In this document: positions 9,044 through 31,588 of the stretch, piece by piece
Position numbering within the stretch: position 1 is the first letter of the stretch
How the letters are laid out: the number at the start of each line of letters is the position of its first letter
Origin: Blastocladiella emersonii ATCC 22665
Taxonomy: Eukaryota > Fungi > Blastocladiomycota
Assembly: GCA_025594325.1 (NCBI GenBank)
Contig: JANHCV010000008.1
Span: 1,736,001 to 1,800,000 of the forward strand
Length of the DNA stretch: 64,000 nucleotides
Direction: 5' to 3'
Made by a program: the position numbers and the translations under genes
The notes under the pieces: model-generated
Databases searched by the model: none
The model's input: the letters and a program-made list of their open reading frames with translations, nothing else
What the model was told of the DNA's origin: nothing

Positions 9044-9048
9044 TATAA
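9044..9048 (+). promoter_or_regulatory. Possible TATA box for the 9115 ORF (mirror at 30967-30971)
   Basis: TATAA in otherwise very GC-rich DNA, about 67 nt upstream of the ATG. Confidence 0.3.
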
Positions 9049-9114
9049 GGGCCCGGCGTCCCCGCCGCTGCCTGCACGCGCGCTCGCTACTCGATCAACC
9101 GCTCCCAGACCACC

Positions 9115-9873
9115 ATGTCCGTCGCCAACTTTGCCAGCACCGCCGCCGTCCAGTCGCAGACGCAGATGGCCGCGGGCGCGCCGGCCGACGTCGCGCAGCT
9201 CCTGTCGCAGCTCCAGTCGCAGCTGGCTCAGTCCCAGCAGCAGGCGCAGCAGCAGCAGGCACACGGTGCCGTCGCCGCACCTGGTCCCGCCACCACCACT
9301 GCCTTCTCGGCCCCCGCCGCGAGCTCTTCCTCGTCCATGTCGACCGCGTCCACGACGCTATCCAACGGCGAGACCCACACCACGACCCTCGTCAACGGCG
9401 TGCCCGTCGGTCACCACCAGCAGCAGGGCCAGTTTGACGGCCACGGGGCCACCGCCTTCGGCAGCGACTACGCGGGATGGCCCTCGACGGGCTCCTCGCA
9501 CCATGACACGTCGTCCTCGTTCCCGGCCCACGACTCGGCCAGCGGATACGGCACTTGGAACGCCAACTCGCACGACGCATGCTGGCCCACCGCAACGGGC
9601 AACACGGACGCGTTCCACACTTCCTCGACGGGCAACCACGGCGACGTGTTCACGCTCGGCTCCGGGTTCGGCGGCGACGCCTTTGTCGCGTCCGCCGGTC
9701 CCGCTCAGGCGACCTCGACCGACCACTCGGCCGCGTTCGGCGGCGGCGGCGGCGGCAACTGGCAGTCGACCTCGAGCCAGACGACGACGGGCGCCGACGG
9801 CCAGTCCGTGACCGTGACCACGGTCGACGGGTCGCACCTGCCGCACGAGATGACCTCGGTCAGCTTTGCCTGA
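9115..9873 (+). CDS. Unknown 252-aa low-complexity Gln/Ser/Thr/Gly/His-rich protein; left-arm copy
   Basis: ATG in ACCATG context, C/G-biased codons, Q-rich N-terminus. No domain recognised. Confidence 0.7.
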   Translation: MSVANFASTAAVQSQTQMAAGAPADVAQLLSQLQSQLAQSQQQAQQQQAHGAVAAPGPATTTAFSAPAASSSSSMSTASTTLSNGETHTTTLVNGVPVGHHQQQGQFDGHGATAFGSDYAGWPSTGSSHHDTSSSFPAHDSASGYGTWNANSHDACWPTATGNTDAFHTSSTGNHGDVFTLGSGFGGDAFVASAGPAQATSTDHSAAFGGGGGGNWQSTSSQTTTGADGQSVTVTTVDGSHLPHEMTSVSFA

Positions 9874-10407
9874 GGTTCCGATCGTGCTGGGCGGCGCTGG
9901 TTAGCTTATATACACTCTTCCCGTGACGACTCGGTTTGGTCCCCTTCGATGCAAGCATTGTGGGGGGCAGGAATGGATTACACGGGCCGGCTGAGGGTGG
10001 CGCTGGTACTCCGCTTCCGGCGAAGCCAAGGTTACCACTTGATCTCGACGGGGACGCTGGTGTTCGTGAGGAAAAGGGCCGTTGAAGGTTTCAAGTCCAC
10101 GCGGGTGGCGCGACGCGTCTTCGCTGCTCATGTCCTCTGTACTCGACAAGTGTCGCTGCTGCGGGCATTGATGTGAAGGTCAGAAGGGAGCGCCACAATG
10201 GCTCCAGTACAATTCCATGGAACAAGTCAAGAACAGGGAAACCAAAACACGGGCGAGCGGAGAGGGGAGAGTTGGGAATCGAAGGGGAACGAGTACGAGC
10301 AAAGGGGAGTCGAGGGGGAGCAAGAGAAAAGGAGGCGGGTGAGGAGACATGGGAAGGGGAACATCAAGTGGAGGAAGGTAGGGAGGGGAGGAGAGCACGG
10401 TCCTCGG

Positions 10408-13102
10408 TCAGCGCGCCCAGCACCGGCACGGTGTTGATGATGGTGATGATGTCGTTCTTGCACTCGAGCTGTTGCGGTGGTGGTGGTGGTGGTGGTGAGG
10501 TTGAACTTGCGGAAGCGTGGTTGCAGTTGCAGTCGAGCTCGAAGTGGTGCCGGTGCCGGTGGTGGTGGTGCGGGTGTGGATGGGATGCGGGTACGAGGCG
10601 GGCGCGCTGACCGAGCAGGTTGAGTGTCGAGGGTGTTGAGGGTGTTGAGCTCGAAGTTGTTGATGCTTGGGGTTGTCGATGCTTGAGTGTTGATGAACCG
10701 ACCGGCCTACACGCGCGCGGATCAGGTCAGTCAACGGGGCAACGATACATGAGCGAAAGAACAGAGGGAGAACATACACAGCGTGTGCGGATCAGGGTCG
10801 ACGCCGTCGCGGCCACGCGCACCCATCGGGGCACGCACGGACATCGCGCGGCTGGCCAACCTCGCCTGAACGAGTGGCCAAGAACCGGCCTCCGGCCTAC
10901 ACGGTGCGAGCACGAACGAGTCAGTCATCCGGATCACGCGAGGGAGGCCGAGAAGCAGGAGAAGACGTACGCTTACTGCGCGGGGCGTGCTCTGCCGCTA
11001 CCGCGCACCTCAACAGGGCGCGGGTCTCTGCGGCCAACCACCTCGCGCCTTGCGCGAGGGGCCAGGGGCTTGGGCCGGGCCTACACGGAACAGACACACG
11101 CGCGCGGGTTAGTCACGGAGATCGATCGTCGATACGCGCGAGAGTGCCGAGGACGTACGCTTTGCGCGCGGCCGAACCCACTGGTCTTGTGCCCCGCGCT
11201 CTGCTGCAGAGCGCGGGTCAACCGGTTCGCAGCACCGGCCTCTCACGGGCCAGGCGCGACACCGGGCCACGCACGCTCGCGCATCAAACGCGGGACTTTT
11301 TTTTTTCTTGCCTCGCCCGCACGCCCGAATATGACCTCGAAGAGGCCCTCGTGGCGTGCGGCGCTGAGGCGCCGGTCCGACCCCGGTCGCGATCCGCTCG
11401 GTCGCACCACCGCGACACACACTCGCACTCTTGGCGAGCGGCGCGGCGGTGGGGCCACGCTCCTTGGCGCGGCTGTCGGCGGAAGGGGACCCGTGTGGAC
11501 GGCGGCCGCGGCGCCCCCGCGAGGGAACGCGCCGCAAGGGCCGCCGTGGTCGAACCGGAATACTTGCGGCCGCTGTGCGTGCCGGGCACTATTGGCCCGC
11601 GACACGCTCTGCTGGCCGCTCACCGTGGTTGTAGTGGTGTCGATGAGCTGGTGGTGGTGGTGCCTTCCGAGGTGAGCCGTCAAGGCTGCCGGCGGTGGCA
11701 GCCTGCGACTGGACCTGGATGGCGGGGTCCCCGGGCAGTAGCACGCGCGAAATGCTCGCGGCGGCGGCGAGCGGCTCGAGTGAACCACCCACACACACGC
11801 GTACGCGAGCAAGTGCGGTACCCGCTACCCGAGGCGACGTGCCGAGGGAACCGCCGTCGCGGCGCGCTTGACTTGACTTGAGGAGCAGGCCGCGGAGCGA
11901 GCGCGTTGGGGTCGTACTCGCTGCGGCCTCTCAGCGCGCGACGGCGGATGTCGGGACGTCGTAGCTAACCGTGACGGGCTGGACCGCGTACAGCTGGGGC
12001 GAGGAGAAGGTACTCGAGAACTCGGACTGGGAGCCCTCGAGGTCGTCGTCTCTCGCGCGAGCTGCTTGAGGGTCGGGACCGAGGAGGAGGCGTGGCGGCG
12101 ACGCAGAAAAGGGTCGGGTGCGTCGCCGCGCCTCGGTCCACGCGGTAGAGCCGGTCGGGCACGCCGGCGCGCGGGCCACTGTGGTCGGTGACAGCGACGT
12201 TGCGAGACCGGGACAGCGAGGAAGCGTGGGGAGCGGGCGCCCGTCGGCCTGCGGGGTGCAGGCGACACGGCAACCCGGACCCCTCTTCCTCACCGTCCCT
12301 TGCCCGTCTGTGGGGCGTGGTCTCGCGCGGAAGCCGTCGGACCCGCGCGTGCCGGAGGTGCTGGTAGTGGTGGGGCGATCGAGTCGAGCTGCGTGATCTG
12401 GCGCGAGGTCGGTGGTACTCGATGGCGGCCGTGGCGGTCGCGACGGCAGCGGCGGCAAACGTGGGGCGGCCGCGCGTCGGACGCGCGCGTGTGTGGATCC
12501 CGCGACAGGATCGGGTGCGAGGAGGCGATGGGCGAGCGAGCGAACCGCGGGTCGTGGCGGCGCTGCTGGTGCCGTCGACTCGCGCGCGGGATCGGGATCG
12601 TGACCTGGTGGTGGTGATGGTCGGTCGTATCGCGCGACCGGTGTCGTCGCCCGTCTGGCCAGCGAGCCTGGCTGACAAGGACGTGCGAGAAAAGGGACCG
12701 GTAGCGGCGCCCCGCGCGGGCCGGCCGACTCGAGAAAGGGCACGAGTGCGGCTGTGGCAGCGGGCGGCGGGACGCAATCTCAAGCGAGTGACGCTGGGTG
12801 GTCGACACGCGAGAGAAAGCGTGTAGGGGCGTGAGCGCGTCGTCCGGCGCGATGATCTGGATGGATGGATGGACGAGAAGTACCGCCGAACTGCTCCTGG
12901 TACGAGTACAGGTACAGGTACTGGCCGAGGAACGAGGTGGCGAGCAGGTGCGGCGGACTTGGGGTGGGTGGCCGGTCGTGGCCGGGCGGCGACAGGTCGT
13001 CGCAGCTGCGGAACGCGTCCTTAGAAAGACGCGAACGTGGCCATGACCGTCGTGGTAGTGCGCGGGTACTGGGCGCGCGGTCTCGGCGAGCGAGACGGAC
13101 AT
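10408..13102 (-). other. Cryptic spliced locus or decayed gene; left-arm copy of 26913-29607
   Basis: Mirror of three canonical intron-like units; no coherent long reading frame. Confidence 0.35.
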
Positions 13103-14829
13103 GATTGTGAACGTGAAGAACAGGCAGATGCCGGCGCCTTGAGAAAAGCGCGCGGATGTACGGCAAAAGGACTCGCGCGCGGCGGTCGCGGTAGTGGACG
13201 CCTGCGGCGAGTCGGCGCGGGGGCTCGCTCGGTCGTGTCGTTGATCAGGTCGACCGAGTCAATAGTCAGTCGTGGCGGGAATACGCGTGACCATGATGAT
13301 CTGCATGGGGACGCGGAAGCGCGCCGCGACGTGGCTGGCCGGCCGGTTGCCGTGTACCGTGGGTGGGTGATGTGGTGGAACCGGGTGCGGCCGCGGATGG
13401 GTCAAAAATCAAAAAGAACAAACACACGGGCGTCGAGGTGCGGAATGCACTCTACACGGGCGACGCGACGCGACGAGTCAGCTGGCCGTGTCCGCCAAGG
13501 CGGGTATCAGCAGCAGCGCGAGATCCGTACCAAGAGGCCTGGATCTCGGTGTGGTGTGGTGTGGCGGGTCGCGACTCTCGAGGAGCTGGTACTGGTGGTA
13601 CTGCCGGTACTGGTAGCCCTGGTGGTGCGCGAGCCCGTGTACGCGTGGCACGAGGTAGTCGAGGCCGGGACGTGAGCTGCGAGACGATCTCTCGCGGTAT
13701 CGGGCCGTCGGTCGACCTGGCCGTGAGCGTGAGCGTGAGCGTGAGCTTGTAGGTACCGCCGCCGTAGTTGAGCGTGGCGGCGAAAATCGTCGAGATAGTC
13801 GGCGCGCTTGGGGCCGGATGACGCGCGCGTGCGAGATCGACGACAATTTTCCCACTGGATCGGCATCGGTGCATGTGAACGTATGCGTTCGGGGCCACTC
13901 CGAGAGCTTTGGCGGCGTCCACGGATCCGCCGCTCTCGCCCGACCACCCAAAAGTACGGATGTACGGGGGTCGAGGCCATGGGAGCGAGTGGGCAATGCA
14001 CCGATGCCGTCCGTACCAGTGGGTCGTGGACGTTGTTGAGTTTGGCCGAGTGCTCGCCGTCGTACCCTCGCAGGATGGCCGGGACGACTTGAGCTGCTTG
14101 CTGGCCTTGGGGCACCGAGTCGCGGACGGCGGGGGCCATGCCGTGCGTGTGTGTACGAGACGCGGTCGGTGCGGGTGCTACGACGACTCGATCGGGACGA
14201 GCGCAATCTTGGTCTGCGGCCGATGATAGAGACGATGCGAGTCGTTCGTGTAGTAGCGGGTGGCGGCCGTGCAGCGCGAGAAGATGGTCGTCGCGCGACG
14301 GCTCGCCGTTGCTCGGAGCCGAGGCCGAGGAATCGACGTTGAGCTGGCGTCGATGGCCGTGCCGGTGACGCGGTCGCGTGCCTGCGAGCGAGCCGAGCAG
14401 GTGCTCGGGACCACGGCGACCGGCGGCCGGGTGCCTGCCCGACACGAGGAGCGCCGAGTACGTGTCGCGCGATCTGGGTCGGGCCGGAACTCGGTGTCGG
14501 CGGGCGCGGCACGGGGCGCGCCGGCAATGACACGACACGAGGTCGCGGCGGCCGCGGGCCGTGGGCCGTGGGACCGCTGGCGTCAAGGAGGGGACTCGAG
14601 CGCCCAGTTGAACTTGTTTTTGCGTTTCTACTTTTGCAGCTGTTTTTGCCGACAGAGTGCCGGGATTTCGTGATTTACTACACAGGAGGGAGTGAGTCGG
14701 GAGCCCGGGACGCGGCCACAGACGGAAAACGTACGAGAACGAGGACGAGAAGAAGGCCAGCCGATGAGCGCGCCGAACGGAAAGCAAAGATGAGAGCAGG
14801 GTGGCGAGGTCCGAGCGAGTCGTTGATTA

Positions 14830-17135
14830 TCACGAAGCAACCCGGCGAGGGTTGACTTTCTTGGACGGCTTGGGGGTGAGGTCCTCGGCGCCGACCTCGC
14901 GCCAGAGCTTCGAGCGCGGGCGCTTTAGGTGCCCGTCAAACACGTCCCAGTGGTCGGATGACAAAGATCCTGCGCCGACTATCTTGTTACCCAGGAGACG
15001 CGTAGCCTCGGTCTGTTTCGGGCGCTTCTCGAGGAGGAAGGAGCGGTCCTCGGCCGTGGCCACGCGTGGAAGCATCCGGCATGCACCGATGAGGAGCGGC
15101 TTCGAGGCGCCGACGTCGACTTGTATGAGCACCCCGCCATACTGAAGCAGTTTCGGGCTGGGCTTCTGCACAACCATCTGCGGGTCGGCAGGCTGCGGGC
15201 GGAAGAACCGCCGTGTCGTCTCCGCTGGGACTTTCGCCCGCCATGAGCGAAGCAGCTTCGAGATGAGCTTGGGCAGCGACTTGCGCCGCAGCGCATCGAA
15301 GTAGTGGTTCCGCGAGTCGAAAGGCTGGACGCGGACCAGCGGGTACTTCTTGGGGTTCGCCTTCATGGCCGCGGCCTGCTCCCACGCGGACCGCCACTTG
15401 AACGTGCGCGGGGGGACGAGCGCGTGGCGGAACGGCGTCGGGCGCTGGATCCCAGGGAGAGCCTTGGCGACGTACGGCGGAATGATGGGCGACTTGCGGA
15501 ACACGGGGTGGATGGCGCAGAAGACCTTGTACGCGAAGCAGACCGCGTCCCACACGATGCGCGACGTCGTGGCGAGGAACGAAAGAATGTCGCCACCCAT
15601 ATCGAGAGCAATGGTGTCGAGGTCAATGTCGCAGCGAGTGACATACTTGACCGTCACCCGCATGGCGGCCGCCAGGTACACGAGGTTGAAGAGCTTGGTC
15701 ATGAAGCGGTCGCCCTCGCACGCGATCTGGATGAGCGGGCAGAAGTCCATGATGGCCGTGAAGAGGCTCGCCGGGAGCACCTCGATGATCGAGGGCAGGC
15801 CGGTCGCGATGCAGCGGATTGCGGTGCGAAAGTACTTGCCGAAGCTACACGGTCAAGAGAGTCAGTGTTGTGCTGATGATGGGCGGCAGAGAAGTCTGTG
15901 TACCACTGCTTCACGAGGCCGAGGAACGTGCGCGTGGTCATCCGGGCGAGGTAGATGCGGTGCGCAACGGAGCGCGGGATCGGGGGCAGCGGGTTGTAGC
16001 CCGTGCGCTTGGCGACGCACGCGACGACGAGCGTGATGAGAGCGACGATCATGGTCGAGATGGACGGGGGAGCCGGAGCGTAGGCGGTCATGGCAACGAG
16101 CGACGAGTCGATGAGCTCGGCGATCGGGGCGGCAATGAAGTTGACGAGGGGCAGGACCGTCGGCTGCTCCAGGGTCGGCGCGGCCGTCGAGGGCACGGTG
16201 GTAGCGACGACGAGACTATCGCCGTTGTCGGACGAGCCGGGCGCCGGGGTGGGCCGAACGCGCATCATGGCCAGCTTGGCGAGGTCGCGGTCCGTGTACT
16301 GGTCGGGCGCGGCGGCGGGCTGAGCGAGCGGCGCCGGGAGGGCCGAGACGTCGGCGGGCTTGTCGTCGACAGCGGAGTGGTCGAAGTAGACGCGCGAGGG
16401 GACGCGCGGGACGGGTTTGTAGAGGGCCGGGGCGATGGCGGCCGCGACGGCCATGGGGGTGAGCGAGAAGTCGGTGCTGATGCAGGCGCCGTGCGGGATG
16501 GCGGCGGTCATGGCGAAGAGCCCCGAGGCGCGGATCGAGTGGGTGCTGTACGGGGTGAAGAGGGTGCGGACCGAGCCCGTAGTCAGGATCAGGGTCTCGC
16601 GCTGCTGCTGCTGGTGGTGGTGGTCGAGAGGCGCGGCGGCCGAAGGCGAGGACGCCTCGGCGGGGTACGTGGCCGAGATCTCGGTGGCGGGCGCCGACGA
16701 GTTGGTCGCGGGCGAAGGAGCGCACGTCGACGGCGGGCACATGTCGGCGTACGCGCACGGGTGGCAGGCCAGCCAGCTGTCGGGCTCGAGCAGGTCCGAG
16801 ACCCACTTCCACGGCGAGGTGCGCGGGGTGGCCGAGTCGATGGCGAGGTAGTCCGATCCGGCGTCGGCGGTCATGCCCGGGACTCGGGGCGGCGGCACGA
16901 GGGTGGTTGTGTTGGTGATGAAGAGCAGGAACTCGGCGGCGGCGGCAGCATGGATCGAGGCAGAGACGGAGGCAGCGGGGGCGACGGGGTAGGCAGCAGC
17001 CGAGACGGCCGCGACGGCGGCGTCGGCAACGGCGGGCATGGGCAGGCCGAAGGCGACGCCCGCGACGAGCGTCAGGAAGACGGCCATGGCGGGCGCGAAC
17101 GCCAGCATGCGGCGGACCTCGCTGAACAGCCACAT
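14830..17135 (-). CDS. Unknown ~748-aa predicted single-pass surface protein A (signal-like N-terminus, Ser/Thr/Ala/Pro-rich region, TM ending CVAKRT, basic C-terminal domain); intron 15845-15903
   Basis: Splicing GTACAC...CTGAC...GTGTAG joins the 478-aa and 316-aa ORFs in frame (LVKQ-C-FGKYF). Hydrophobic MAVFLTLVAGVAFG and MIVALITLVVACV segments. Exact start codon uncertain. Confidence 0.72.
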
Positions 17136-20100
17136 GGTAGACGATCACACCGGGTGCGCGAGGGGTTGGATTCGATTGCTCGGATGCAGCTATCGCGCGG
17201 GCTTTGGGTACAGGGAGCGTCTAGGGCCGGTGCAGGCATCTCGACGGGGCGGGCGGCAGGCGGCGTGGGGAGGGCAGCGCCCGGGCGCGCGCGCGGGCGG
17301 CCCGCGGGCAGCGATTGCAACAAGCTACGTGGCGCCGGGTCGGCCGGGGCGGTGGGCAGCATCGCGGCGCGGGGGAGACGTTTCGCCGACGCGTCGCGGT
17401 GCGAGACGCGTCCGAGACGCGTCCGCGATGCATGAAACACGCGCGCGCCGCGGTCACGCCGGGGCAGGTGGCTCGGCGCGCCGCCATGCTCCGTCTCGCC
17501 CGCTCTCCCCGGCACACGCTGCAACGCGCACGCGGCGGGCGCCCGAGTCGATGAACATGGATGGCAACTCGATGCAATGCTGCCCGCGGGCGACGCCGAG
17601 TCCGCGCGGCCGGGCCGGAGGGCGCGCCGACCGCGCGCGCCGACCGCGCGCGCTTCCGCGGGCCGATGCGGCACCCAGCGCACACCAAGTGGGCGACGAT
17701 GCTTCGGTCGTGTGGTGTGGTGTGGGCCGGCTTGGTTCCAAACCGCGGTGATCGCAATCGTGATGACTCGGCGCGTGAACCCGGCGGCGCGCGTGGCCCG
17801 CATGGCGCCCGCCCGCTCCACCTCACCACCGCTGACCATCCCGCCCGCCCGCCGACCTACTTTCCCGCACGCCCGCATGCCGGCCGACACTTGCGGCAAT
17901 GTCGCGCTCTTCATCGCCGTGAGCGACTGGTCGCGGTGCCCGACCACAACGCCTCTCGACCGAGCCTTCCATTGCAGTTTGCGTCCGTGTTGCCCATGGT
18001 ACGGGACCGCAGGGTCCTCATCCTCGTCCGCGACGTGAGAATCAATCCCGCGAGCGACTGCCCGCGGCGGTGCTGTTCCCGCGGAGCATGAGCGCGCGTC
18101 GCGCCACGCTGACGCGTCAGAGCTCCGCGGCAGCCGCTTCACGTGGGCTGACCGGACCGGCGTGCCGGATCCGCCGAGCGAGCCGACCTCCTTGCCGCCG
18201 AACTCGCTACCTGACTCGCTACCGACGCTCCCCGGCGACAATGTGGATGTATCGACCCGCTAACTTGCCCGCAACGACCTCCCCGTGGGACTCACGACGC
18301 TTGGTCGGCAGCGAACGGCTACCCGCGCCTCACGCGCTTCTTGCCGTCGCCGCCGAGTCTCCTCGTTCGCTGAGACACGCTCTTCCTCAACGTACGCGAT
18401 CCTGACGAACAACGGTGGGTGAACACCGCTTGTTCACACTGCCCGCAGCTCGCAGTCGCGCTCGTCGCTCTCCTAGAACTCTTGTTGCGGTACACCTCTC
18501 GCGGCCTGCTTCCCGACATCCCGTGTGCTCCACCACGGCGAAGCACGCGACCATTGCTGATTTATCGCCTCTCAATACCTCCCGCTACTTGCTCGCGCCA
18601 CTTCTGGAGCTCGCGTGCACGCGCCGGCCGCGCCGGGCGACCCAGCACAATCGACTTTAGAAGAACCCGACGCGCGTACCGGGCGCGTGTTTTTGAACCC
18701 GCGGCTCGTTGCCCGCGGGACCGCGGTGACCTTGCCCGAGCTCGCCGTGTTCTTATGGCGCGATTGCCGATGCACCTCGTCCGGCGCTCTATAGCGCCCG
18801 TCGTCCGTGATTTTGGTCCACGGCCGCGCAACTAACTCTCTGCGGCGGAAACGCTCGACGCCACCCTCTCCACTCCGCGCTCGACCGCTATCATGGCGGC
18901 GGTGGGCGGCGCGTCCTTCTCCCTGACTCGGCCGACGCCTTGGGGCAGCCTGCTTTCGTCGGCGACGCGCAAGATCGCCTCTTGCACCGCTTTCGGCGTT
19001 ATTGGGTGGCGTCGAACGCACCTCAGCAACGCTGCCAAGTACCTTCGGCCGGCAACGGCGACCTCACTAACCACGGGTGCGCTCCCTGACGTGCTCTGCG
19101 ACTCTCCATGCTCTCCGGCAACTCAAACAGGATCATTGTGGTGTTTATGCGGAACCCCCTGCTCGCCTAGCTTCTGTCAATGCGAGCGTCGACAACGCGA
19201 CGGCGGCCACCGAAGTTGGGAGCAGTGCGGTCATCATGAGCCCGGCGTGGCTAGAGAGTGATGAGAGCTCGCTCAAGACCGTTACCAGGATTCTCGTCCC
19301 GCGCCGTACGGTTTCTTGTCGTTCGGGGTGGAACCTCTTCGCGAGCGGGTCCAGCAGCACGTCCTCGATCGGCCTCAACTCTGAGCCGCGCACCGTCGAT
19401 GCCATCAACGCTTCGCAGCCGGGCCGCGTGCGATGTCGGCAAGTCGGGCAACGGAGGTGCGTATCCGGCTCGTCGCCAGGTCGACCACCGCTTCGGGAAA
19501 CTCACGCCGCCTTCAAGCTAGGAATCGACTTTGTTGGGCACCTCATGCCGTGGGACGCGCTCCCGGACCCCGAGGCGCTCGAAGCTCCGACCGACCTCGT
19601 GGTACTCGCCACGGGCGGCGCATCCGCACTCGACAGCCGTCGTTGGGGAGGGCAAGTCGACGCAGCGGCCGCTCTCTCCAGGACCCCTGCACGGGTTTGC
19701 GGCCGTTGTCGGTGCGTACGCGCGCGAACACGGGTCGGCGCTCGGGATCAAGGTATCGGATTGGAGCGCGGCGGGCACCATCAAGTGGATGACGCGGGTC
19801 GCGGCGACACCGCTGGTCCTCATGAATCCGCTGCCCGTGCACGAGTCGTGGCGGGAAGTAGACGAGGAAGATGCTGACGAGTTTGATCCGACGCGGCAGT
19901 CCATGTGCGTCGTCAGCCCGCTGTCGCGGCAGCTGTGGCCGTGGCTCGACGTGGGCGAGTTTCGCGCCAGGAACGGCGAGCGGTGGCATCGGCTAAGGGT
20001 GGCTGATGGTGGTTGCGGCGCACAATAGAGGGCGGTGTATGTTACTCTGAGCCGCGCGAGAGCAAGGGTTGTTGGAGGTCGGTCGGTGGGACGGAGGCGG

Positions 20101-20780
20101 GCCGGGCAGCGACTCCGGCTGTGAGATCGGGCTCCCGGTAAGGTCGAGAGCAGCGGGAGGCCACGGTCAGATTGTCGCATGGGCTTCTCCCAGCGAGATC
20201 AAGGTAAGAGAGATCTCGCAGGTCGGACGAGGGGCCGGGTCGGCGTCGGCGGCGTCGACCTCGTCACGGCGACCTCGGCCGACGGCGCGGAACAACGCAG
20301 AGATGCATTGCGGGCAGTTCTGCGGGTATGGGACCGGCGGAAAAGAGGTGCACCGCGACTCCTGGAGGGGCTCGGTGTCCCATCCGAGCGCCGCAGCGTG
20401 TCTCACCTCGGCTCACGCGATCGCGACGCGCAACGCGTTGCTCATCCTCGTCGACGACCGCCGCAAGCCCGTCGGTCCTCTGTCCCACGACGACCATGGC
20501 GACCATGAACGAACGAGTGCTCGTGCAACGGGCCGAGACGGCGACCAGACGGGCGGGTCGGGGCATCCGCCGCCGCAGCGGTGGTCGCTCCCGCGCGCCC
20601 ACGAGCCGACCATGGACCAAGCATGCGAACGTGGACGAGATGGATGTGTGAGCATGGATGGCGACGGGAGGAGTAGTGCGGGAGCCGGTGGCGGCTGATT
20701 GCAGGGTGAGAGTCGCGTGTGGCGTTCATCATCATCATCACCGCGTCGGTCGGCCGTACCGGCGGATCACCGGGCCGATC

Positions 20781-20835
20781 ACCGACCGCCGACCACCGAC
20801 CGCCGACCACCGACCACCGACCACCGACCACCGAC
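20781..20835. repeat. Heptamer minisatellite (A/G)CCGACC x8
   Basis: Read directly from the sequence. Confidence 0.9.
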
Positions 20836-21579
20836 TAACGTCGCCCGTGCCGCCGCGCGGGATCCACGGGACTACTTGATAGCTACCGCGCGCGGGCACC
20901 GCCGGCGTCGGCGCATCGCATTGCATCCAGTCGCATCCCGACTCGTCCATCTCGTTCGCCCGCGACCCGCCGTCCGAAATCATCGCGCGAGAGAGCGACC
21001 GTCGGTAACGGGCGCGGCGCTCGCTTTCACTTGCCCTCCGCCACGCTCGAACCAGAGTTCGAACCACGGTCCGCCCGCCGCGGTCCGCCACACGCACGCG
21101 GCGGCGCCGCGCTGTCTCCCGCCGGCGCACCCTTCCACTCGCGCGCCGCGCCGCGCCGTGTTCGCGTCCGCGGGTCCGCACCGGCCCTCGACCAATCATG
21201 TCGCGAGGCGCTCGATCGCCGCTTCGTTAGCGGAGCGGGCACTCGGCGCAACGCGTCCCGCACAAGTGTCTCGCGCCGACCCGCCCGCACGTGCTGCGCC
21301 GCGCCCGTGTCTCCGCCGGTGCGCGTGCGCCGACGCGTCGCGCGTCTCCCTGAAAGATGTCCACCGCGCCGACGCGTCGCGCGCGCCGTGCCGTGCACCG
21401 CGGCACCCGCCGTGCCCGCCCGCCGTGCCCGCCCGCCGCGATGCCCCTGCACTCCATGTCGCGGCATCGTCCGCCTCTGCTCTGCTCGTCATTGAAGAGA
21501 TTGAGAAAGTGTATGAGATACAACCTGCTGTAAAGCACGAACCCACCCGGATCCAGAACCACGCGGTCTCGTCGTCAAG

Positions 21580-23281
21580 ATGAAGCCCGTGTGCGACGCG
21601 ATCATCGCCCGCCTCATGGCCGGGCTCATGGCCCTCGCCATCCTGTTCGCGGCCTTCGCCGCCCCCGCCGTTGCCGTGTCCGCCGTCGCCGCTGCCGCGA
21701 CCTGCTCGCCCATCCCGATCGTCTGCCCGGCGACCGTCTGCCCCGCCGTCCTCTCGGACTGCGTCTACCTGATCGAGTTCCCGTCTACGCCCACGTCTAC
21801 CTCGACGTCCATCGCTCGGACCAAGCTGTTCCCGAACCAGACGCTCGCCAACCTGACGCTCGTCATGCTCACGACGACCTCGGCCTCCTCGCTCACCGGC
21901 ACCGACACGTACGACCCGTGCCGCTCGGACCTGTACCGCGCCACCGACCTATCGGCCTCGATCGGCTCGCGGTTCACGCCCGCCTCGATCAACGCGTCGG
22001 CGTCCGCCCTCTCGGCGGCCTCGCACGGCGACGCGTTGTGGACCTGGCTCTCGGGTCTCGTCTCGACCACGGCTTCCGCGTCCGCGTGGCTCACCCTCGC
22101 CTCGGCCTCGGCCGACGCCAACACCAACGTCACGTCGGTTCCGCCCGTGACGGCCAAGAACGGCACCTACGCCAACCAGACCGTCTCGGCCATGGCCGCC
22201 GCCATGTGCCGCGCCCGGACCACGCGCCTTCCCGTCGACGACCTCTCGCTGTTCGCCTCGGCGCCGTCAGCTTTCGGTACGCGTCCATTTCTCACTCTTC
22301 TGCCCGCCACACAAACAGCGCGATTGACCACCGTAAGCTGTATAGCCGACAAGGAGGTCATCACGCTCGCGCAGTTTGACTACGACCTGTACAAGTACGG
22401 GTCCGTCGACATGGCCCTCATGTCGTCGCCCCAGGCGGCCGACACGGTCGTCGCGCTCAGCAAGGGCGCGTTCGTCGGCTCCGACATGACGCTCCTGCCC
22501 GAGACCATCTCGGCCGCCCTGATGCGCCGCCAGCGCATCGACGACATCGAGCAGCAGGTCATCGTGCTGCAGAAGAAGTCGCTCGCCCAGGAGCAGCAGC
22601 TCCTCGCCAAGGACCAGGTGATCTCGGCCAAGGACCAGCGCATCTACGAGCTCGAGCAGCAGCTCAAGCTGGCCCTCACGAAGCCGGTCCGCACCTACAT
22701 CGACTCGAAGCCCGTGCCGGCCGCCGCCGCCGGTCACGGCATGACCAAGGACTCGGCGGCCCCGCTGCCGCCGCTCGCGCAGCCCCTCGCCGCGCCTGAG
22801 CAGCACTCGGCCCGCGACCTCACCAACATGGCCAAGGCGCACATCGAGCCCACGCCTGCTCCACACCACCACCAGGTCCTCGACAACGAGCAGGACCACG
22901 GCCACAACTCGATGGCGGACGCCCGCGCGTACTGGACAGAGACCCGGCTCACCCGCGCCGTCACGCTGATCACTGACGGCCTCGACTCGGCCATGCACGC
23001 CGTCGCGACGCGCGTCAGCTTCCGCTACTCGTCCGTCCCGGCCATCCCGGCGTCGCTCAACCCGTCCAGCGCCAGCTTCCTCGTCGTAATTGACGTGATC
23101 ATGTCGCCGGCCTTCATCACCATCGCGATTTTGGTCCTCGCCGTCGTGTGTGTCGCGAAGCGCACCTCGCTCCTTGACCAGCCGATGGATGATCTCTCGT
23201 AAGTTCTCTCCGTTCTCCGACTTGCGCCGCAGTACCATGATCACTGACTGACCTGGTCACGCGTGTAGGATGCGACTGTAG
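21580..23281 (+). CDS. Unknown predicted surface protein B, N-terminal part (~520 aa; signal-like N-terminus, Cys/Thr-rich region, coiled coil, TM ending CVAKRT); introns 22277-22345 and 23199-23268; paralog of protein A
   Basis: GTACGC...TATAG and GTAAGT...CTGAC...GTGTAG introns; shared motif PLAQPxAAPxQxxxRDLxxxAxxxxxPTPAP; coiled-coil-like QRIDDIEQQVIVLQKKSLAQEQQLLAKDQ. Confidence 0.72.
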
Positions 23282-25314
23282 TGGGCGACTGCCAAAATCA
23301 AGGGTCTCACGGCCACCTCGGCGCCAGCCACCATGCCCTCGGGCCTGGCCCAGCACTGGCTCAAGGCCGCCTTCTACCTCCTGCAGATTCAGCACTCCTT
23401 TTGCGTATCCCAGGCCACTCTCCTCGTCGGCTCCACGCACAAGCACCTTCGCCGGCTCCAGTCCGCGCTCTCGTTCAACGCGTCGCGCACCGACAGCGCC
23501 GTCGAGCTCGACATCGACGACATGACGCCCGAGATCGAATTGGATTTCAACCGGATCCGGACAATGTACGCTCTTGCTCGCGTGCTCGACTCGTACCCGG
23601 AGCCGCGATAACTAACCTTCGTACGTGCGTCAGGGTGCTCAACTGGGGTACCATCAACATCGACGGACGCAAGGCGGAGCAGCGCATGTTCATCTGGTTC
23701 CCGCACTGGATCAACGTCTTCTACCCCGAGCTCGCCGGCACCATGCTCAACTTCAAGCAGCTCATGTTCAAGTCGGCACCCTCGCCGACTGCTTCCAGCC
23801 CGGCCGAGAACCGCCTTCCGTTCCTCGTCCATCTCGACACGGACCATCTGTGGGCCGCCGCGTTCATCTTCTCGTACACCAACCTGGGCACGTTCATCCA
23901 GCACCAGCAGCTGCTCGAGCGCGCCACGACCGCCTACCACCTCGCGTGCGCCAACTTCCGCCCCGATCCGGAGGTGGTCAAGGGCACCACGGGCCTCATG
24001 AACGCGCACCGTGCCTCGCTCCTGCGCGCTGCCCGCGAGCACAACGTGGCCCTCGCCGCGGCTGGCGGCGCCGAGCCCGCCGAGATGATTGCCCGCGGTG
24101 CGGCTCGCCTCATCGAGTCGGACACGGACAACGAGCTGTCGCTCAAGCACCTGCAGCCCGGCCGCCGTTCGGCCGTCTGGTGGAGACACGCTCCCAAGAC
24201 CGTTATCACCAACCTGCGCGCCATCCTGATCACCAAGCCGCAGTACGGCGACGATACCCTCGTCAAGAGCCTGGCTGTCACCGCCAACGGGCGCCGGGTC
24301 GCGTTCCCGATCCCCGCATGGACGGGCACGTCCAGCTACATGCCGCACACGCAGCACGTCAAGTTCATGGAGTACATTGTGCGGGCGCAGCCGCCCATGT
24401 TTTTCGTTACCATCAACGATAACTCCAAGCAGCTCGACACGCACTTTCGCGACACGCGCGGGCTCACGGACAAGGACCGCAAGTGGACTTCCGACGACCG
24501 CCTGCAGACGGTCCCTGTGTTTTCGCGGTTCTCGGCTGCCGTTCGCAACGCCGACGGCACACGTTCGACCAAGACCCTCGCCGTCTCGCAGTCGCACTTT
24601 GTCCGCAAGTACGTGCGGTCGGAGACCGAGCGTTTCGAGATTCGCCACCGCGTCGCGTCCGACTTTGCCGAGATGATCGCTCGCAGCAAGATGCACGGCG
24701 TGTCGATTGAGCGGTGGAACGCTGCGGCGCAGACCGCTCGGGACCTCGGCGCGCACCCCACGCAGCAGACCATGATCCAGACCAGCGGCACGCCCGTCAC
24801 GCTCAACGAGATCGACGTGGCCATGGCCATCGCCACCCGCACCACGCTCACCAACACGGCCGCCGTGCTCGCCCGCCGTCGCGTCGTGCAGCAGCAGCAG
24901 CTCAACACGCCGTTCCAGGGCTCCAAGCTCAACCCGGTGTACGCGGCGATGTACGTCGGCGATGACGATGCCGACGTCGGCCCGCTGCCAGCGGCGGGGC
25001 TCGACTCGCACCTGGTCCAGGACAGCTACCCGCCCAAGCACAGCACCTACATGAGCTACTCGGCGCGCCTGGTGTCCATGCACTCGTCCATCATCCACAA
25101 CGACGGCCGCCTCGTCCTCCTCGAGGCTGACGCCAAGGGCGAGGTCTACCAGTTCGTCCGGCCGGACGCGCTGATCAACTGCGAGCCGAGCTCGCTGGAG
25201 CACTGGAAGCCGCTGCACCCTCTCCGCACCGTGAGTACTCACTCCGATGGCCCGTACTTTGGGGCCAACAAGGAGATTCTCAAACTTCTCCCCGTCTACG
25301 ATAACTCCGATTAG
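23282..25314 (+). CDS. Unknown globular-looking region in frame with protein B after one TAG (or a separate 637-aa gene from ATG 23333); intron 23566-23633
   Basis: Intron GTACGC...CTAAC...GTCAG joins the MPSGLAQHW... ORF to the long 23281-25314 frame; strong codon bias to the stop at 25314. Confidence 0.68.
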
Positions 25315-26912
25315 GTAGCGCTCGCCTACCTCCCCCTTTTCTACCCTTTGCTTTACTTTCCGTTTTGCGTTTTCGTCACCAAAAAAAACCAACGAAACCC
25401 GAAAAAAAGCTTCGACCAGCCGTGTGCGCACCCTCGCGCGCACGCGCCCATCTCGGCCCGCGGCCGCCGCGACCTCGTGTCGTGTCATTGCCGGCGCGCC
25501 CCGTGCCGCGCCCGCCGACACCGAGTTCCGGCCCGACCCAGATCGCGCGACACGTACTCGGCGCTCCTCGTGTCGGGCAGGCACCCGGCCGCCGGTCGCC
25601 GTGGTCCCGAGCACCTGCTCGGCTCGCTCGCAGGCACGCGACCGCGTCACCGGCACGGCCATCGACGCCAGCTCAACGTCGATTCCTCGGCCTCGGCTCC
25701 GAGCAACGGCGAGCCGTCGCGCGACGACCATCTTCTCGCGCTGCACGGCCGCCACCCGCTACTACACGAACGACTCGCATCGTCTCTATCATCGGCCGCA
25801 GACCAAGATTGCGCTCGTCCCGATCGAGTCGTCGTAGCACCCGCACCGACCGCGTCTCGTACACACACGCACGGCATGGCCCCCGCCGTCCGCGACTCGG
25901 TGCCCCAAGGCCAGCAAGCAGCTCAAGTCGTCCCGGCCATCCTGCGAGGGTACGACGGCGAGCACTCGGCCAAACTCAACAACGTCCACGACCCACTGGT
26001 ACGGACGGCATCGGTGCATTGCCCACTCGCTCCCATGGCCTCGACCCCCGTACATCCGTACTTTTGGGTGGTCGGGCGAGAGCGGCGGATCCGTGGACGC
26101 CGCCAAAGCTCTCGGAGTGGCCCCGAACGCATACGTTCACATGCACCGATGCCGATCCAGTGGGAAAATTGTCGTCGATCTCGCACGCGCGCGTCATCCG
26201 GCCCCAAGCGCGCCGACTATCTCGACGATTTTCGCCGCCACGCTCAACTACGGCGGCGGTACCTACAAGCTCACGCTCACGCTCACGCTCACGGCCAGGT
26301 CGACCGACGGCCCGATACCGCGAGAGATCGTCTCGCAGCTCACGTCCCGGCCTCGACTACCTCGTGCCACGCGTACACGGGCTCGCGCACCACCAGGGCT
26401 ACCAGTACCGGCAGTACCACCAGTACCAGCTCCTCGAGAGTCGCGACCCGCCACACCACACCACACCGAGATCCAGGCCTCTTGGTACGGATCTCGCGCT
26501 GCTGCTGATACCCGCCTTGGCGGACACGGCCAGCTGACTCGTCGCGTCGCGTCGCCCGTGTAGAGTGCATTCCGCACCTCGACGCCCGTGTGTTTGTTCT
26601 TTTTGATTTTTGACCCATCCGCGGCCGCACCCGGTTCCACCACATCACCCACCCACGGTACACGGCAACCGGCCGGCCAGCCACGTCGCGGCGCGCTTCC
26701 GCGTCCCCATGCAGATCATCATGGTCACGCGTATTCCCGCCACGACTGACTATTGACTCGGTCGACCTGATCAACGACACGACCGAGCGAGCCCCCGCGC
26801 CGACTCGCCGCAGGCGTCCACTACCGCGACCGCCGCGCGCGAGTCCTTTTGCCGTACATCCGCGCGCTTTTCTCAAGGCGCCGGCATCTGCCTGTTCTTC
26901 ACGTTCACAATC

Positions 26913-29607
26913 ATGTCCGTCTCGCTCGCCGAGACCGCGCGCCCAGTACCCGCGCACTACCACGACGGTCATGGCCACGTTCGCGTCTTTCTAAGGACGC
27001 GTTCCGCAGCTGCGACGACCTGTCGCCGCCCGGCCACGACCGGCCACCCACCCCAAGTCCGCCGCACCTGCTCGCCACCTCGTTCCTCGGCCAGTACCTG
27101 TACCTGTACTCGTACCAGGAGCAGTTCGGCGGTACTTCTCGTCCATCCATCCATCCAGATCATCGCGCCGGACGACGCGCTCACGCCCCTACACGCTTTC
27201 TCTCGCGTGTCGACCACCCAGCGTCACTCGCTTGAGATTGCGTCCCGCCGCCCGCTGCCACAGCCGCACTCGTGCCCTTTCTCGAGTCGGCCGGCCCGCG
27301 CGGGGCGCCGCTACCGGTCCCTTTTCTCGCACGTCCTTGTCAGCCAGGCTCGCTGGCCAGACGGGCGACGACACCGGTCGCGCGATACGACCGACCATCA
27401 CCACCACCAGGTCACGATCCCGATCCCGCGCGCGAGTCGACGGCACCAGCAGCGCCGCCACGACCCGCGGTTCGCTCGCTCGCCCATCGCCTCCTCGCAC
27501 CCGATCCTGTCGCGGGATCCACACACGCGCGCGTCCGACGCGCGGCCGCCCCACGTTTGCCGCCGCTGCCGTCGCGACCGCCACGGCCGCCATCGAGTAC
27601 CACCGACCTCGCGCCAGATCACGCAGCTCGACTCGATCGCCCCACCACTACCAGCACCTCCGGCACGCGCGGGTCCGACGGCTTCCGCGCGAGACCACGC
27701 CCCACAGACGGGCAAGGGACGGTGAGGAAGAGGGGTCCGGGTTGCCGTGTCGCCTGCACCCCGCAGGCCGACGGGCGCCCGCTCCCCACGCTTCCTCGCT
27801 GTCCCGGTCTCGCAACGTCGCTGTCACCGACCACAGTGGCCCGCGCGCCGGCGTGCCCGACCGGCTCTACCGCGTGGACCGAGGCGCGGCGACGCACCCG
27901 ACCCTTTTCTGCGTCGCCGCCACGCCTCCTCCTCGGTCCCGACCCTCAAGCAGCTCGCGCGAGAGACGACGACCTCGAGGGCTCCCAGTCCGAGTTCTCG
28001 AGTACCTTCTCCTCGCCCCAGCTGTACGCGGTCCAGCCCGTCACGGTTAGCTACGACGTCCCGACATCCGCCGTCGCGCGCTGAGAGGCCGCAGCGAGTA
28101 CGACCCCAACGCGCTCGCTCCGCGGCCTGCTCCTCAAGTCAAGTCAAGCGCGCCGCGACGGCGGTTCCCTCGGCACGTCGCCTCGGGTAGCGGGTACCGC
28201 ACTTGCTCGCGTACGCGTGTGTGTGGGTGGTTCACTCGAGCCGCTCGCCGCCGCCGCGAGCATTTCGCGCGTGCTACTGCCCGGGGACCCCGCCATCCAG
28301 GTCCAGTCGCAGGCTGCCACCGCCGGCAGCCTTGACGGCTCACCTCGGAAGGCACCACCACCACCAGCTCATCGACACCACTACAACCACGGTGAGCGGC
28401 CAGCAGAGCGTGTCGCGGGCCAATAGTGCCCGGCACGCACAGCGGCCGCAAGTATTCCGGTTCGACCACGGCGGCCCTTGCGGCGCGTTCCCTCGCGGGG
28501 GCGCCGCGGCCGCCGTCCACACGGGTCCCCTTCCGCCGACAGCCGCGCCAAGGAGCGTGGCCCCACCGCCGCGCCGCTCGCCAAGAGTGCGAGTGTGTGT
28601 CGCGGTGGTGCGACCGAGCGGATCGCGACCGGGGTCGGACCGGCGCCTCAGCGCCGCACGCCACGAGGGCCTCTTCGAGGTCATATTCGGGCGTGCGGGC
28701 GAGGCAAGAAAAAAAAAAGTCCCGCGTTTGATGCGCGAGCGTGCGTGGCCCGGTGTCGCGCCTGGCCCGTGAGAGGCCGGTGCTGCGAACCGGTTGACCC
28801 GCGCTCTGCAGCAGAGCGCGGGGCACAAGACCAGTGGGTTCGGCCGCGCGCAAAGCGTACGTCCTCGGCACTCTCGCGCGTATCGACGATCGATCTCCGT
28901 GACTAACCCGCGCGCGTGTGTCTGTTCCGTGTAGGCCCGGCCCAAGCCCCTGGCCCCTCGCGCAAGGCGCGAGGTGGTTGGCCGCAGAGACCCGCGCCCT
29001 GTTGAGGTGCGCGGTAGCGGCAGAGCACGCCCCGCGCAGTAAGCGTACGTCTTCTCCTGCTTCTCGGCCTCCCTCGCGTGATCCGGATGACTGACTCGTT
29101 CGTGCTCGCACCGTGTAGGCCGGAGGCCGGTTCTTGGCCACTCGTTCAGGCGAGGTTGGCCAGCCGCGCGATGTCCGTGCGTGCCCCGATGGGTGCGCGT
29201 GGCCGCGACGGCGTCGACCCTGATCCGCACACGCTGTGTATGTTCTCCCTCTGTTCTTTCGCTCATGTATCGTTGCCCCGTTGACTGACCTGATCCGCGC
29301 GCGTGTAGGCCGGTCGGTTCATCAACACTCAAGCATCGACAACCCCAAGCATCAACAACTTCGAGCTCAACACCCTCAACACCCTCGACACTCAACCTGC
29401 TCGGTCAGCGCGCCCGCCTCGTACCCGCATCCCATCCACACCCGCACCACCACCACCGGCACCGGCACCACTTCGAGCTCGACTGCAACTGCAACCACGC
29501 TTCCGCAAGTTCAACCTCACCACCACCACCACCACCACCGCAACAGCTCGAGTGCAAGAACGACATCATCACCATCATCAACACCGTGCCGGTGCTGGGC
29601 GCGCTGA
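26913..29607 (+). other. Cryptic spliced locus or decayed gene; right-arm copy
   Basis: Intron-like units 28857-28934, 29039/29045-29118 and 29238-29308, each with a GT(A)YGT/GTAAGC donor, CTRAC branch point and CGTGTAG acceptor. Short coding-like stretches are broken by frame changes. Confidence 0.35.
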
Positions 29608-30141
29608 CCGAGGACCGTGCTCTCCTCCCCTCCCTACCTTCCTCCACTTGATGTTCCCCTTCCCATGTCTCCTCACCCGCCTCCTTTTCTCTTGCTCCCC
29701 CTCGACTCCCCTTTGCTCGTACTCGTTCCCCTTCGATTCCCAACTCTCCCCTCTCCGCTCGCCCGTGTTTTGGTTTCCCTGTTCTTGACTTGTTCCATGG
29801 AATTGTACTGGAGCCATTGTGGCGCTCCCTTCTGACCTTCACATCAATGCCCGCAGCAGCGACACTTGTCGAGTACAGAGGACATGAGCAGCGAAGACGC
29901 GTCGCGCCACCCGCGTGGACTTGAAACCTTCAACGGCCCTTTTCCTCACGAACACCAGCGTCCCCGTCGAGATCAAGTGGTAACCTTGGCTTCGCCGGAA
30001 GCGGAGTACCAGCGCCACCCTCAGCCGGCCCGTGTAATCCATTCCTGCCCCCCACAATGCTTGCATCGAAGGGGACCAAACCGAGTCGTCACGGGAAGAG
30101 TGTATATAAGCTAACCAGCGCCGCCCAGCACGATCGGAACC

Positions 30142-30900
30142 TCAGGCAAAGCTGACCGAGGTCATCTCGTGCGGCAGGTGCGACCCGTCGACCGTGGTCA
30201 CGGTCACGGACTGGCCGTCGGCGCCCGTCGTCGTCTGGCTCGAGGTCGACTGCCAGTTGCCGCCGCCGCCGCCGCCGAACGCGGCCGAGTGGTCGGTCGA
30301 GGTCGCCTGAGCGGGACCGGCGGACGCGACAAAGGCGTCGCCGCCGAACCCGGAGCCGAGCGTGAACACGTCGCCGTGGTTGCCCGTCGAGGAAGTGTGG
30401 AACGCGTCCGTGTTGCCCGTTGCGGTGGGCCAGCATGCGTCGTGCGAGTTGGCGTTCCAAGTGCCGTATCCGCTGGCCGAGTCGTGGGCCGGGAACGAGG
30501 ACGACGTGTCATGGTGCGAGGAGCCCGTCGAGGGCCATCCCGCGTAGTCGCTGCCGAAGGCGGTGGCCCCGTGGCCGTCAAACTGGCCCTGCTGCTGGTG
30601 GTGACCGACGGGCACGCCGTTGACGAGGGTCGTGGTGTGGGTCTCGCCGTTGGATAGCGTCGTGGACGCGGTCGACATGGACGAGGAAGAGCTCGCGGCG
30701 GGGGCCGAGAAGGCAGTGGTGGTGGCGGGACCAGGTGCGGCGACGGCACCGTGTGCCTGCTGCTGCTGCGCCTGCTGCTGGGACTGAGCCAGCTGCGACT
30801 GGAGCTGCGACAGGAGCTGCGCGACGTCGGCCGGCGCGCCCGCGGCCATCTGCGTCTGCGACTGGACGGCGGCGGTGCTGGCAAAGTTGGCGACGGACAT
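30142..30900 (-). CDS. Unknown 252-aa low-complexity protein; right-arm copy
   Basis: Identical translation to 9115-9873. Confidence 0.7.
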   Translation of the reverse strand: MSVANFASTAAVQSQTQMAAGAPADVAQLLSQLQSQLAQSQQQAQQQQAHGAVAAPGPATTTAFSAPAASSSSSMSTASTTLSNGETHTTTLVNGVPVGHHQQQGQFDGHGATAFGSDYAGWPSTGSSHHDTSSSFPAHDSASGYGTWNANSHDACWPTATGNTDAFHTSSTGNHGDVFTLGSGFGGDAFVASAGPAQATSTDHSAAFGGGGGGNWQSTSSQTTTGADGQSVTVTTVDGSHLPHEMTSVSFA

Positions 30901-31588
30901 GGTGGTCTGGGAGCGGTTGATCGAGTAGCGAGCGCGCGTGCAGGCAGCGGCGGGGACGCCGGGCCCTTATACATCTCCGACGCGAGCGGTGGGCAGTGGA
31001 GGCGAGGCGGGTCCGGAAATAGTCGTCGCCGCGTCGTTCACCGAGGGCGACGGCGGCACCCGAAACCCGCGCGCCCTGGATCCCGACGGCGGCCTGCGGT
31101 ACAGCAGCTGCGGTCCGGAGCGCGGTCGAATCGGCACGGGCTGGGCGTCGCCGGGCCGGCCGAGGCGGGCGAGTGGACGCGACGTCGCGGTCGCTGCGGC
31201 GCACGGTGAGACCGGCCGAGTCAGCGATGGATCCCCGAACGCCAGGCCCACCACCATCCACCGTCTGCGATACGGCGCGGCACGGTTCTTGAGACGAGGG
31301 CCGCGCGCGGGTGGCGGTGCGGCGTCGACGGTGAGACCGCCGCCGTCACGGCCGCGAGTCCACCATCGCGACGCCGCCCGTCCGTTCATTCGTGTTCATG
31401 AGGTCGATTGCATGTCACGGCCGAAAAGCGAGAGAGAGCGGCGGTCGCACGGGAGAGCGTGAGAGCGGGCCGCCCTGCGTCGTCGTCCACAGCGACGTCG
31501 TCGCTTCCCTCATCCTCTCCCCCTTCCAACAACACCACCCGCCCATGTATACTCGCTGCAACGACGACGCGGCGCCGACACGACAACC

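Follow-up and report, generated by a model that had tools for sequence, protein, structure and literature searches.

Head-to-head paralogues of a putative membrane-protein family, one of them apparently split by a nonsense codon, in the spacer of a Blastocladiella emersonii palindrome

A perfect palindrome near the end of contig JANHCV010000008.1 (1,801,506 bp) of the zoosporic fungus Blastocladiella emersonii ATCC 22665 encloses two diverged genes, here called A and B, that are transcribed away from each other. This arrangement raises the question of whether A and B are alternatives whose expression is switched by flipping of the DNA between the arms, or whether their layout is a by-product of the way in which the region was duplicated. 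We analysed a window of 64,000 nucleotides at the end of the contig (1,736,001-1,800,000; the positions given below are those of the window). The assembly was built from PacBio HiFi reads with Illumina polishing, and its genes were modelled with funannotate and ab initio predictors (PMC9730499). Each arm measures 9,528 nt, with 100% identity between the two, and the spacer enclosed by them is 10,892 bp long (14562-25453). GenBank lists three spacer genes, which are A, H9P43_006974 (B) and H9P43_006975 (D), and third-position guanine-plus-cytosine (GC) content, which is 0.85-0.99 in the three genes, outlined three coding blocks within the spacer (Table 1). The analysis shows that A and B are diverged paralogues and suggests that their family is one of fast-evolving type I (single-pass) membrane proteins, so far found only in B. 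emersonii, that B and D are a split copy carried in a duplicated block, and that the head-to-head layout is a by-product.

A previous description of the window, made from the letters alone (the sequence-only reading), had presented A and B as divergent genes with common motifs in the same order. Both points held. The open reading frames (ORFs) of A (15699-17135, minus strand) and B (21580-23202, plus strand) diverge from the spacer centre, and every motif that had been named was found, in the same order in A and B. BLASTP aligned the two proteins with an E value of 5e-8 over 73 amino acids. The proteins are collinear at 28-29% identity, and their local and global alignment scores lay about 10-11 standard deviations above those of shuffles that preserved local composition, none of which reached them. 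Similarity was also present at the DNA level, in inverted orientation, with 70.6% identity over 136 nt in the PLAQP block and 86% identity over 29 nt at the end of the membrane helix.

The predicted proteins have the same build up to the membrane helix. On the Kyte-Doolittle scale each of them peaks (2.2-2.7) in one N-terminal and one C-proximal segment. The hydrophobic N-terminal segments (residues 9-38 of A and 3-33 of B) are followed by a cleavage-like small-x-small site (...AVA), and in both proteins there is one further peak above 2.2 that is followed by KR, the pattern of a single helix with a positively charged cytoplasmic side. These features bear out the membrane helix, and are compatible with the signal-like N-terminus, that had been proposed for both genes; A has in addition a weak peak (1.63) at residues 430-451. 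The outer parts consist of 16-20% Ala, are rich in Ser, Thr and Pro, and contain two N-glycosylation sequons in A and six in B. In A, the signal-like N-terminus is followed by an Ala/Pro/Ser/Thr-rich ectodomain, the membrane helix and a tail of about 370 amino acids. In B, it is followed by an ectodomain with a coiled-coil-like insert of about 45 amino acids that is missing from A, the membrane helix (23086-23166) and a tail of 14 amino acids. A family of this kind would have a cleavable-looking signal peptide, a low-complexity Ala/Ser/Thr/Pro ectodomain that is probably glycosylated and carries the short motifs W-x-W-x-S-x-L, ALxKPV and PLAQP...RDL...PTPAP, a helix ending in CVAKRT, and a long variable post-helix region, presumably cytoplasmic and different from copy to copy. 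On this evidence the likeliest products of A and B are glycoproteins of the cell surface or endomembranes, with an outer part on which constraint is weak or diversifying.

An exhaustive HMMER search with D returned one relative, P0003 (1,026 amino acids, E 5e-27). It is encoded on contig JANHCV010000007.1 (contig 7), as are P0004 and P0005, which are near-identical to it (H9P43_006025, H9P43_005997 and H9P43_006007 for P0003, P0004 and P0005, respectively). The contig-7 genes have predicted fused products of about 1,025 amino acids. All three are 69% identical to B over the full span of B and then run on in frame into a stretch that is 44-53% identical to the first approximately 195 residues of D, which are homologous to residues ~571-767 of the fused proteins. 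The family thus defined has at least five genes, dispersed over two contigs.

Comparison with the contig-7 genes changed the picture of B and D. The sequence-only reading had treated B as one continuous gene extending to 25314, and this part had to be given up. The unspliced B frame stops at a TAA (23200-23202) 14 codons past the helix. A GTAAGT donor overlaps this stop, the contig-7 gene models have an intron exactly at the end of B, and the corresponding intron in the window has the branch site CACTGAC. When B-D is spliced like its homologues, it reads ...MDDLS-MRL-TAG-WATAKIKGLTATSAPAT-M(23333)..., a conceptual product of 1,175 codons with a sole stop at codon 521, three codons past the conserved intron. 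The contig-7 copies have CCG where the window has TAG, and from this alignment the stop appears to have arisen by base substitutions rather than by an indel. Alternative splicing did not remove it: use of a 3′ splice site at 23281 would put D in the wrong frame, and among the other choices only the homologous site at 23268 holds the D frame, with the TAG remaining. An assembly error at the TAG is unlikely, since the assembly is HiFi-based and Illumina-polished. H9P43_006974 and H9P43_006975 would then be one ancestral gene that was split by a nonsense codon. As left by this stop, B would be a membrane protein almost without a tail and D a separate, intact reading frame.

We considered whether the split could yield two products by design, either through low-frequency read-through of the TAG or through initiation of D at its own start codon (23333), such that a tail-less anchor would be made together with a full-length or free cytoplasmic protein. 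The D start is in a strong Kozak-like context (GCCACCATGC), the D frame is intact for 637 codons, and the D ATG is conserved in the fused copies. However, the context after the stop (TAG TGG GCG) is in our judgement unlike known read-through contexts, and a recent mutation accounts for the same facts. We consider this explanation very unlikely.

In contrast to B, A has no stop at this point. Its frame stays open for 32 codons past KRT, with high third-position GC, before an intron at 15845-15903 whose signals (GTACAC..ACTGAC..GTGTAG) we judged fair. Because this intron joins the A frame to the ORF at 14830-15844, A keeps the fused build. The simplest model has exons at 15904-17135 and 14830-15844, and its plain stop at 14830-14832 gives the 748-amino-acid product. 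As many as 162 GT-AG intron combinations fit the annotated length of 740 amino acids, and in the region of the annotated end (14675-14734) all combinations of that length give a last exon that consists of a stop codon only. The annotated 3′ end of A looks doubtful.

The sequence-only reading had described the regions after the helix as unrelated to each other and to any recognised family. This was borne out, in that the post-helix part of A showed no relation to that of B and no domain was matched. Pfam searches rose above noise for none of the queries (A, B, D, the contig-7 proteins and the spacer ORFs), and no match was obtained in PHROGs. A word-indexed search of 5.8 billion proteins with B, D and an A+B profile returned the query genes only, with a length window that excluded the 1,026-amino-acid relatives. 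For the C-terminal ~370 amino acids of A we found no relative in D, the contig-7 proteins, Pfam, solved structures or the protein atlas, a language-model search that also returned nothing for B. The search of solved structures with this part of A gave noise only, its comparison with a profile of the D N-terminus gave an hhalign probability of 2%, and the similarity between A and the contig-7 copies in the YL.R..T..F.GL segment right after the helix was not significant. Single-sequence AlphaFold2 models of the A C-terminus and of D were unusable, with mean predicted local distance difference test (pLDDT) values of 35 and 32, respectively.

B and D lie in a duplicated block of about 10.5 kb. Ahead of B-D the block includes a truncated gene and the B promoter, and it ends in a C-rich non-coding tail of about 4.5 kb. 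The window from 19345 to 23530 is 86-89% identical to every contig-7 locus (BLASTN). Homology then falls to 63-67% up to position ~24022, disappears, and restarts about 15 nt ahead of the common TAG stop (25300). After the D stop it extends to ~29854, which is 4.4 kb into the right arm, and it is mirrored in the left arm. The tail (25454-29854, with its mirror at 10161-14561) is without coding periodicity and has an excess of C on the plus strand, with GC skew reaching -0.49. The contig-7 annotation places a 212-amino-acid gene and the end of a 1,276-amino-acid model (P0005) within the tail; neither is likely to be genuine. An RRG7-like gene fragment forms the left edge of the block, and the same gene is complete on contig 7. 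The sequence-only reading had named, as an outcome that would speak against it, that both genes are ordinary members of a large dispersed family; the dispersal was found, as the block occurs three times on contig 7.

The contig-7 copies themselves form inverted pairs, as calculated from the record coordinates. P0004 (minus strand) and P0005 (plus strand) are a head-to-head pair whose 10.25-kb arms share 99.98% identity across a 17.3-kb spacer. P0005 also pairs with P0003, in inverted copies of 14.3 kb with 99.7% identity at a distance of about 52 kb. Contig 7 contains in all three overlapping inverted copies of the one block. At L003:7804-7934, in one of the contig-7 loci of the P0004/P0005 pair, identity to the sister copy steps at one point from about 79% to 99.98%, which looks like the edge of a copy-correction tract in which one copy was overwritten by another.

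In three different sequence contexts the block has the same ends, to within about 30 bp. This agreement would be expected if the block were a mobile element, in which the B-like gene would encode an envelope-like glycoprotein with signal peptide, coiled coil and anchor, and D would be a remnant of a rolling-circle (Helitron-type) replication protein. The language-model search of the protein atlas did place D nearest to Helitron_like_N clusters (score 0.90), but with a low recognition value (1497). As a Helitron replication protein (PF14214), D was rejected: it matched neither Helitron_like_N in Pfam nor any solved structure in sequence searches at E values up to 10. Moreover, no terminal inverted repeats were found at the block ends, the left end falls within a host gene of which contig 7 has a complete copy, and the tail is non-coding. 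We regard a mobile element as extremely unlikely. A hairpin at the right end of the block (GGAGC, about 10 nt, GCTCC; 29810-29838) lies about 10 nt before the contexts diverge.

The history that we favour accounts for the palindrome as well as for the split gene. The family would have a second branch, much younger, of which B-D is the copy at this locus and of which the contig-7 members are unsplit. The block would have been duplicated several times in the genome, often in inverted orientation. Its tail, together with 5.1 kb of local flank, would have been duplicated in inverted orientation here, or kept identical by copy-correction from arm to arm, and this would have produced the perfect arms. 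In this order of events, B-D would have arrived with the block beside the older A, and the segment 25454-34981 would later have been copied in inverted orientation to the far side of A. The head-to-head layout would be a by-product of inverted segmental duplication and not a regulatory device. Arrival with the block is favoured by the position of the block edge within the spacer, by the truncated upstream gene, and by the much greater age of A. The arms are 100% identical, whereas the same tail on contig 7 is 86-93% identical; a young duplication and ongoing gene conversion look alike in arm identity and cannot be told apart by it.

The sequence-only reading had seen the pair as an older palindrome nested within the young one. 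Along these lines, the palindrome may be ancient and may have formed in place. A and B-D would then be the mirror halves of an old inverted duplication whose arms were copy-corrected while the inner part diverged, and the contig-7 copies would derive from the B side. The geometry is consistent with this account, in that the 3′ end of A lies 114-270 bp from the left arm and the D stop 139 bp from the right arm, in mirror orientation. The young head-to-head pair P0004/P0005 in its 99.98% identical arms shows how such a pair begins, and the sharp step in identity at L003 is as in copy-correction tracts. On the other hand, protein identity between A and B is only 28%, compared with 69% between B and its contig-7 homologues, and A therefore predates the spread of the block. 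In addition, the block edge at 19345 is within the spacer and falls in a truncated gene that contig 7 has in full, which points to arrival from elsewhere. No significant similarity between the A side and the B side is left in the upstream regions, and that between the 3′ flanks of A and D was not significant despite a common CTTTGCTTTCCGTT-like string. We consider in-place origin possible but somewhat doubtful.

The rate of change of B-D was compared with that of the surrounding DNA. For B together with the first exon of D against P0003, the synonymous divergence (dS) was 0.14 and the ratio of nonsynonymous to synonymous divergence (dN/dS) was 1.15, or 1.06 for the part up to the stop. Divergence of the upstream non-coding DNA was 11%, which is near this dS. 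All coding indels in B and D are in frame, the ORFs are intact and the splice signals are retained, against 41 gap columns in the 2.2 kb of non-coding sequence upstream. This combination fits weak or diversifying constraint on the protein sequence together with selection that would keep the frames open.

The same numbers bear on a further possibility, that B-D is a dying copy knocked out by its nonsense codon and that the whole family is drifting without a maintained function. The in-frame nonsense codon itself, a dN/dS of about 1.1, a dS near the level of divergence in the non-coding flanks, the lack of relatives found outside the species and the ab initio nature of the gene models are all in keeping with decay. 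Against decay stand the intact ORFs, which span 1,620 nt (B), 1,914 nt (D) and about 2,240 nt (A), the restriction of indels to in-frame changes, the conserved splice signals, a third-position GC of about 0.9, and the abundance of indels in non-coding flanks of equal age. We consider decay unlikely.

Several points weigh against our preferred interpretation, that of a fast-evolving membrane-protein family with B-D as a split copy. A dN/dS near 1 fits loss of function too. If A were a mere bystander, its position adjoining the left arm as a mirror of B-D would be a coincidence. The searches described above produced neither a homologue from outside the species nor a Pfam domain, and the structure models were unusable. 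The assignment of surface glycoprotein comes from composition and hydropathy, and we infer the topology, glycosylation and localisation of the products, as well as the order of the duplication events. Finally, the annotation was made with ab initio predictors (PMC9730499), so that three things are predictions: the splicing, the fusion of the contig-7 genes and the expression of D on its own.

We next return to the switch. The sequence-only reading had likened A and B to alternative idiomorphs in a flip-flop locus, the expression of which would be switched by flipping of the spacer between the arms. Perfect 9.5-kb inverted arms could support such an inversion, and A and B differ strongly past the membrane helix. 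However, both genes and the entire 4.4-kb region between their starts are inside the spacer, and inversion would therefore change no link between promoter and gene; no promoter lies outside the invertible segment. B is also not specific to the locus, as it is a copy, at 86-89% DNA identity, of the block present three times on contig 7, and its cytoplasmic module is severed by the stop. The variants are paralogous copies on two contigs, not alleles, and no homeodomain, high-mobility-group (HMG) or other known domain was found in Pfam scans of the locus proteins. No sexual cycle is known in B. emersonii. The idiomorph interpretation was abandoned, and a switch of this kind is hardly credible. 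Satellite DNA begins about 25 kb away; a long-range position effect from it would be the sole orientation-dependent difference possible, which is pure speculation.

The other part of that interpretation, in which A and B were lineage-specific variants with different cytoplasmic modules, was supported as regards paralogy, lineage specificity and the differing post-helix regions of the family, whereas the module of B is cut off by the stop. A 1.28-kb coding segment of the window (24023-25297) and 0.73 kb at contig-7 locus L002 (L002:12628-13353) are unrelated to each other and lie between conserved flanks, so that the segment looks like a replaced cassette inside one gene. In a stronger version, surface receptors would be built as cassettes, with a conserved outer part, helix and 3′ end around cytoplasmic modules that are interchangeable and are shuffled between palindromic copies. 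The modules would be the C-terminus of A, the body of D and the C-terminus of the contig-7 copies, and the split B/D would be a working two-part variant. We consider this version highly improbable. If it were true, cassette shuffling would be a source of variation in recognition or signalling in an asexual zoosporic fungus.

The yeast FLO adhesins, the Candida ALS adhesins and the Pneumocystis MSG proteins are fast-evolving families of surface glycoproteins located in duplicated regions at chromosome ends. A and B resemble them in having a signal-like N-terminus, a low-complexity outer part that is rich in Ser, Thr, Pro and Ala and has candidate glycosylation sites, and rapid protein change; their copies are likewise spread by segmental duplication, and A and B lie near a contig end beside satellite DNA. 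Unlike these families, A and B would be fixed in the membrane by a helix with a large cytoplasmic region after it and not by a glycosylphosphatidylinositol (GPI) anchor. Their family has no tandem repeats, only about five known copies and no sequence relationship to the others. The palindrome, with its perfect 9.5-kb arms, its unique spacer and older copies elsewhere at 86-93% identity, is similar to the human and primate sex-chromosome palindromes that undergo gene conversion, although here the paralogues of interest are in the spacer rather than in the arms, and conversion would be one possible reason for the identity of the arms. Unrelated blocks within homologous flanks (the D body versus the contig-7 C-terminus) recall idiomorphs, the yeast 2-micron FLP system and bacterial phase-variation invertons, and the inverted repeats could permit flipping, as in the FLP system and invertons. 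In contrast to idiomorphs and invertons, the variants here are paralogous loci and not alleles, there is no promoter outside the segment, and neither a recombinase nor mating-type genes were found.

These results correct the gene picture, in that H9P43_006974 and H9P43_006975 would represent a single ancestral gene, and they define, in a model zoosporic fungus, a small family of fast-evolving membrane proteins without detectable relatives elsewhere. The family is tied to duplicated blocks that build palindromes in the B. emersonii genome. The basis for reading the locus as a switch or a mating-type locus is removed, and from their predicted features the members are candidate surface proteins of zoospores or sporangia.

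Table 1. Features of the palindrome and its spacer (positions in the window unless contig 7 is named; a dot denotes no strand; paired entries are given in the order shown in the first column)
Feature	Position	Strand	Basis or remark
Left palindrome arm	5034-14561	.	Tail of the duplicated block (non-coding), inverted, makes up the inner 4.4 kb (10161-14561)
Gene A	14830-17135 (annotated 14675-17135)	-	Annotation 740 aa; simplest model here 748 aa
Coding block	14830-17135	-	Third-position GC; frame change near 15850
Membrane helix of A, ends VACVAKRT	16002-16079	-	Kyte-Doolittle, motif placement
VACVAKRT (A) / VVCVAKRT (B)	16002-16025 / 23143-23166	- / +	Motif placement
PLAQP...PTPAP (A) / (B)	16239-16331 / 22771-22863	- / +	Motif placement
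LYKPV... (A) / LTKPV... (B)	16380-16424 / 22675-22704	- / +	Motif placement
Most conserved ectodomain motifs of A (LYKPV..., PLAQP...PTPAP)	16239-16424	-	70.6% DNA identity to 22727-22862
SPWKWVSDLL (A) / ALWTWLSGLV (B)	16788-16817 / 22033-22062	- / +	Motif placement
Region between A and B starts, common upstream region	17136-21579	.	4.4 kb; no strong coding signal
Duplicated block, ~10.5 kb	19345-29854	+	Three copies on contig 7, 86-93% identity (BLASTN)
RRG7-like gene fragment without 5′ end	19346-20028	+	First 275 nt of the 961-nt contig-7 gene region missing
Gene B, H9P43_006974, 517 aa	21580-23202	+	GenBank annotation; intron 22277-22345
Coding block	21580-23200	+	Third-position GC
Intron conserved with contig-7 copies	23199-23268	+	GTAAGT..CACTGAC..GTAG; holds the annotated TAA stop of B
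In-frame TAG separating B from D after splicing	23279-23281	+	CCG (Pro) in contig-7 copies
Coding block	23280-25314	+	Third-position GC; frame change near 23600
Gene D, H9P43_006975, 637 aa	23333-25314	+	GenBank annotation; intron 23566-23633
Part of D found only in the window	24023-25297	+	~0.7 kb of unrelated coding sequence in contig-7 copies
Right palindrome arm	25454-34981	.	25454-29854 is the tail of the duplicated block; remainder is local flank
Arms of P0004 / P0005 (L003 / L004)	contig 7, ~57.7-67.9 kb / 85.2-95.5 kb	- / +	Record coordinates

A search of the spacer against Rfam gave no match. The region upstream of B contains a (CCGACCA) microsatellite of about nine copies (20775-20835). 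The local flank in the right arm carries a gene for a 252-amino-acid protein, a zf-CCCH gene and an ITPK1 gene.

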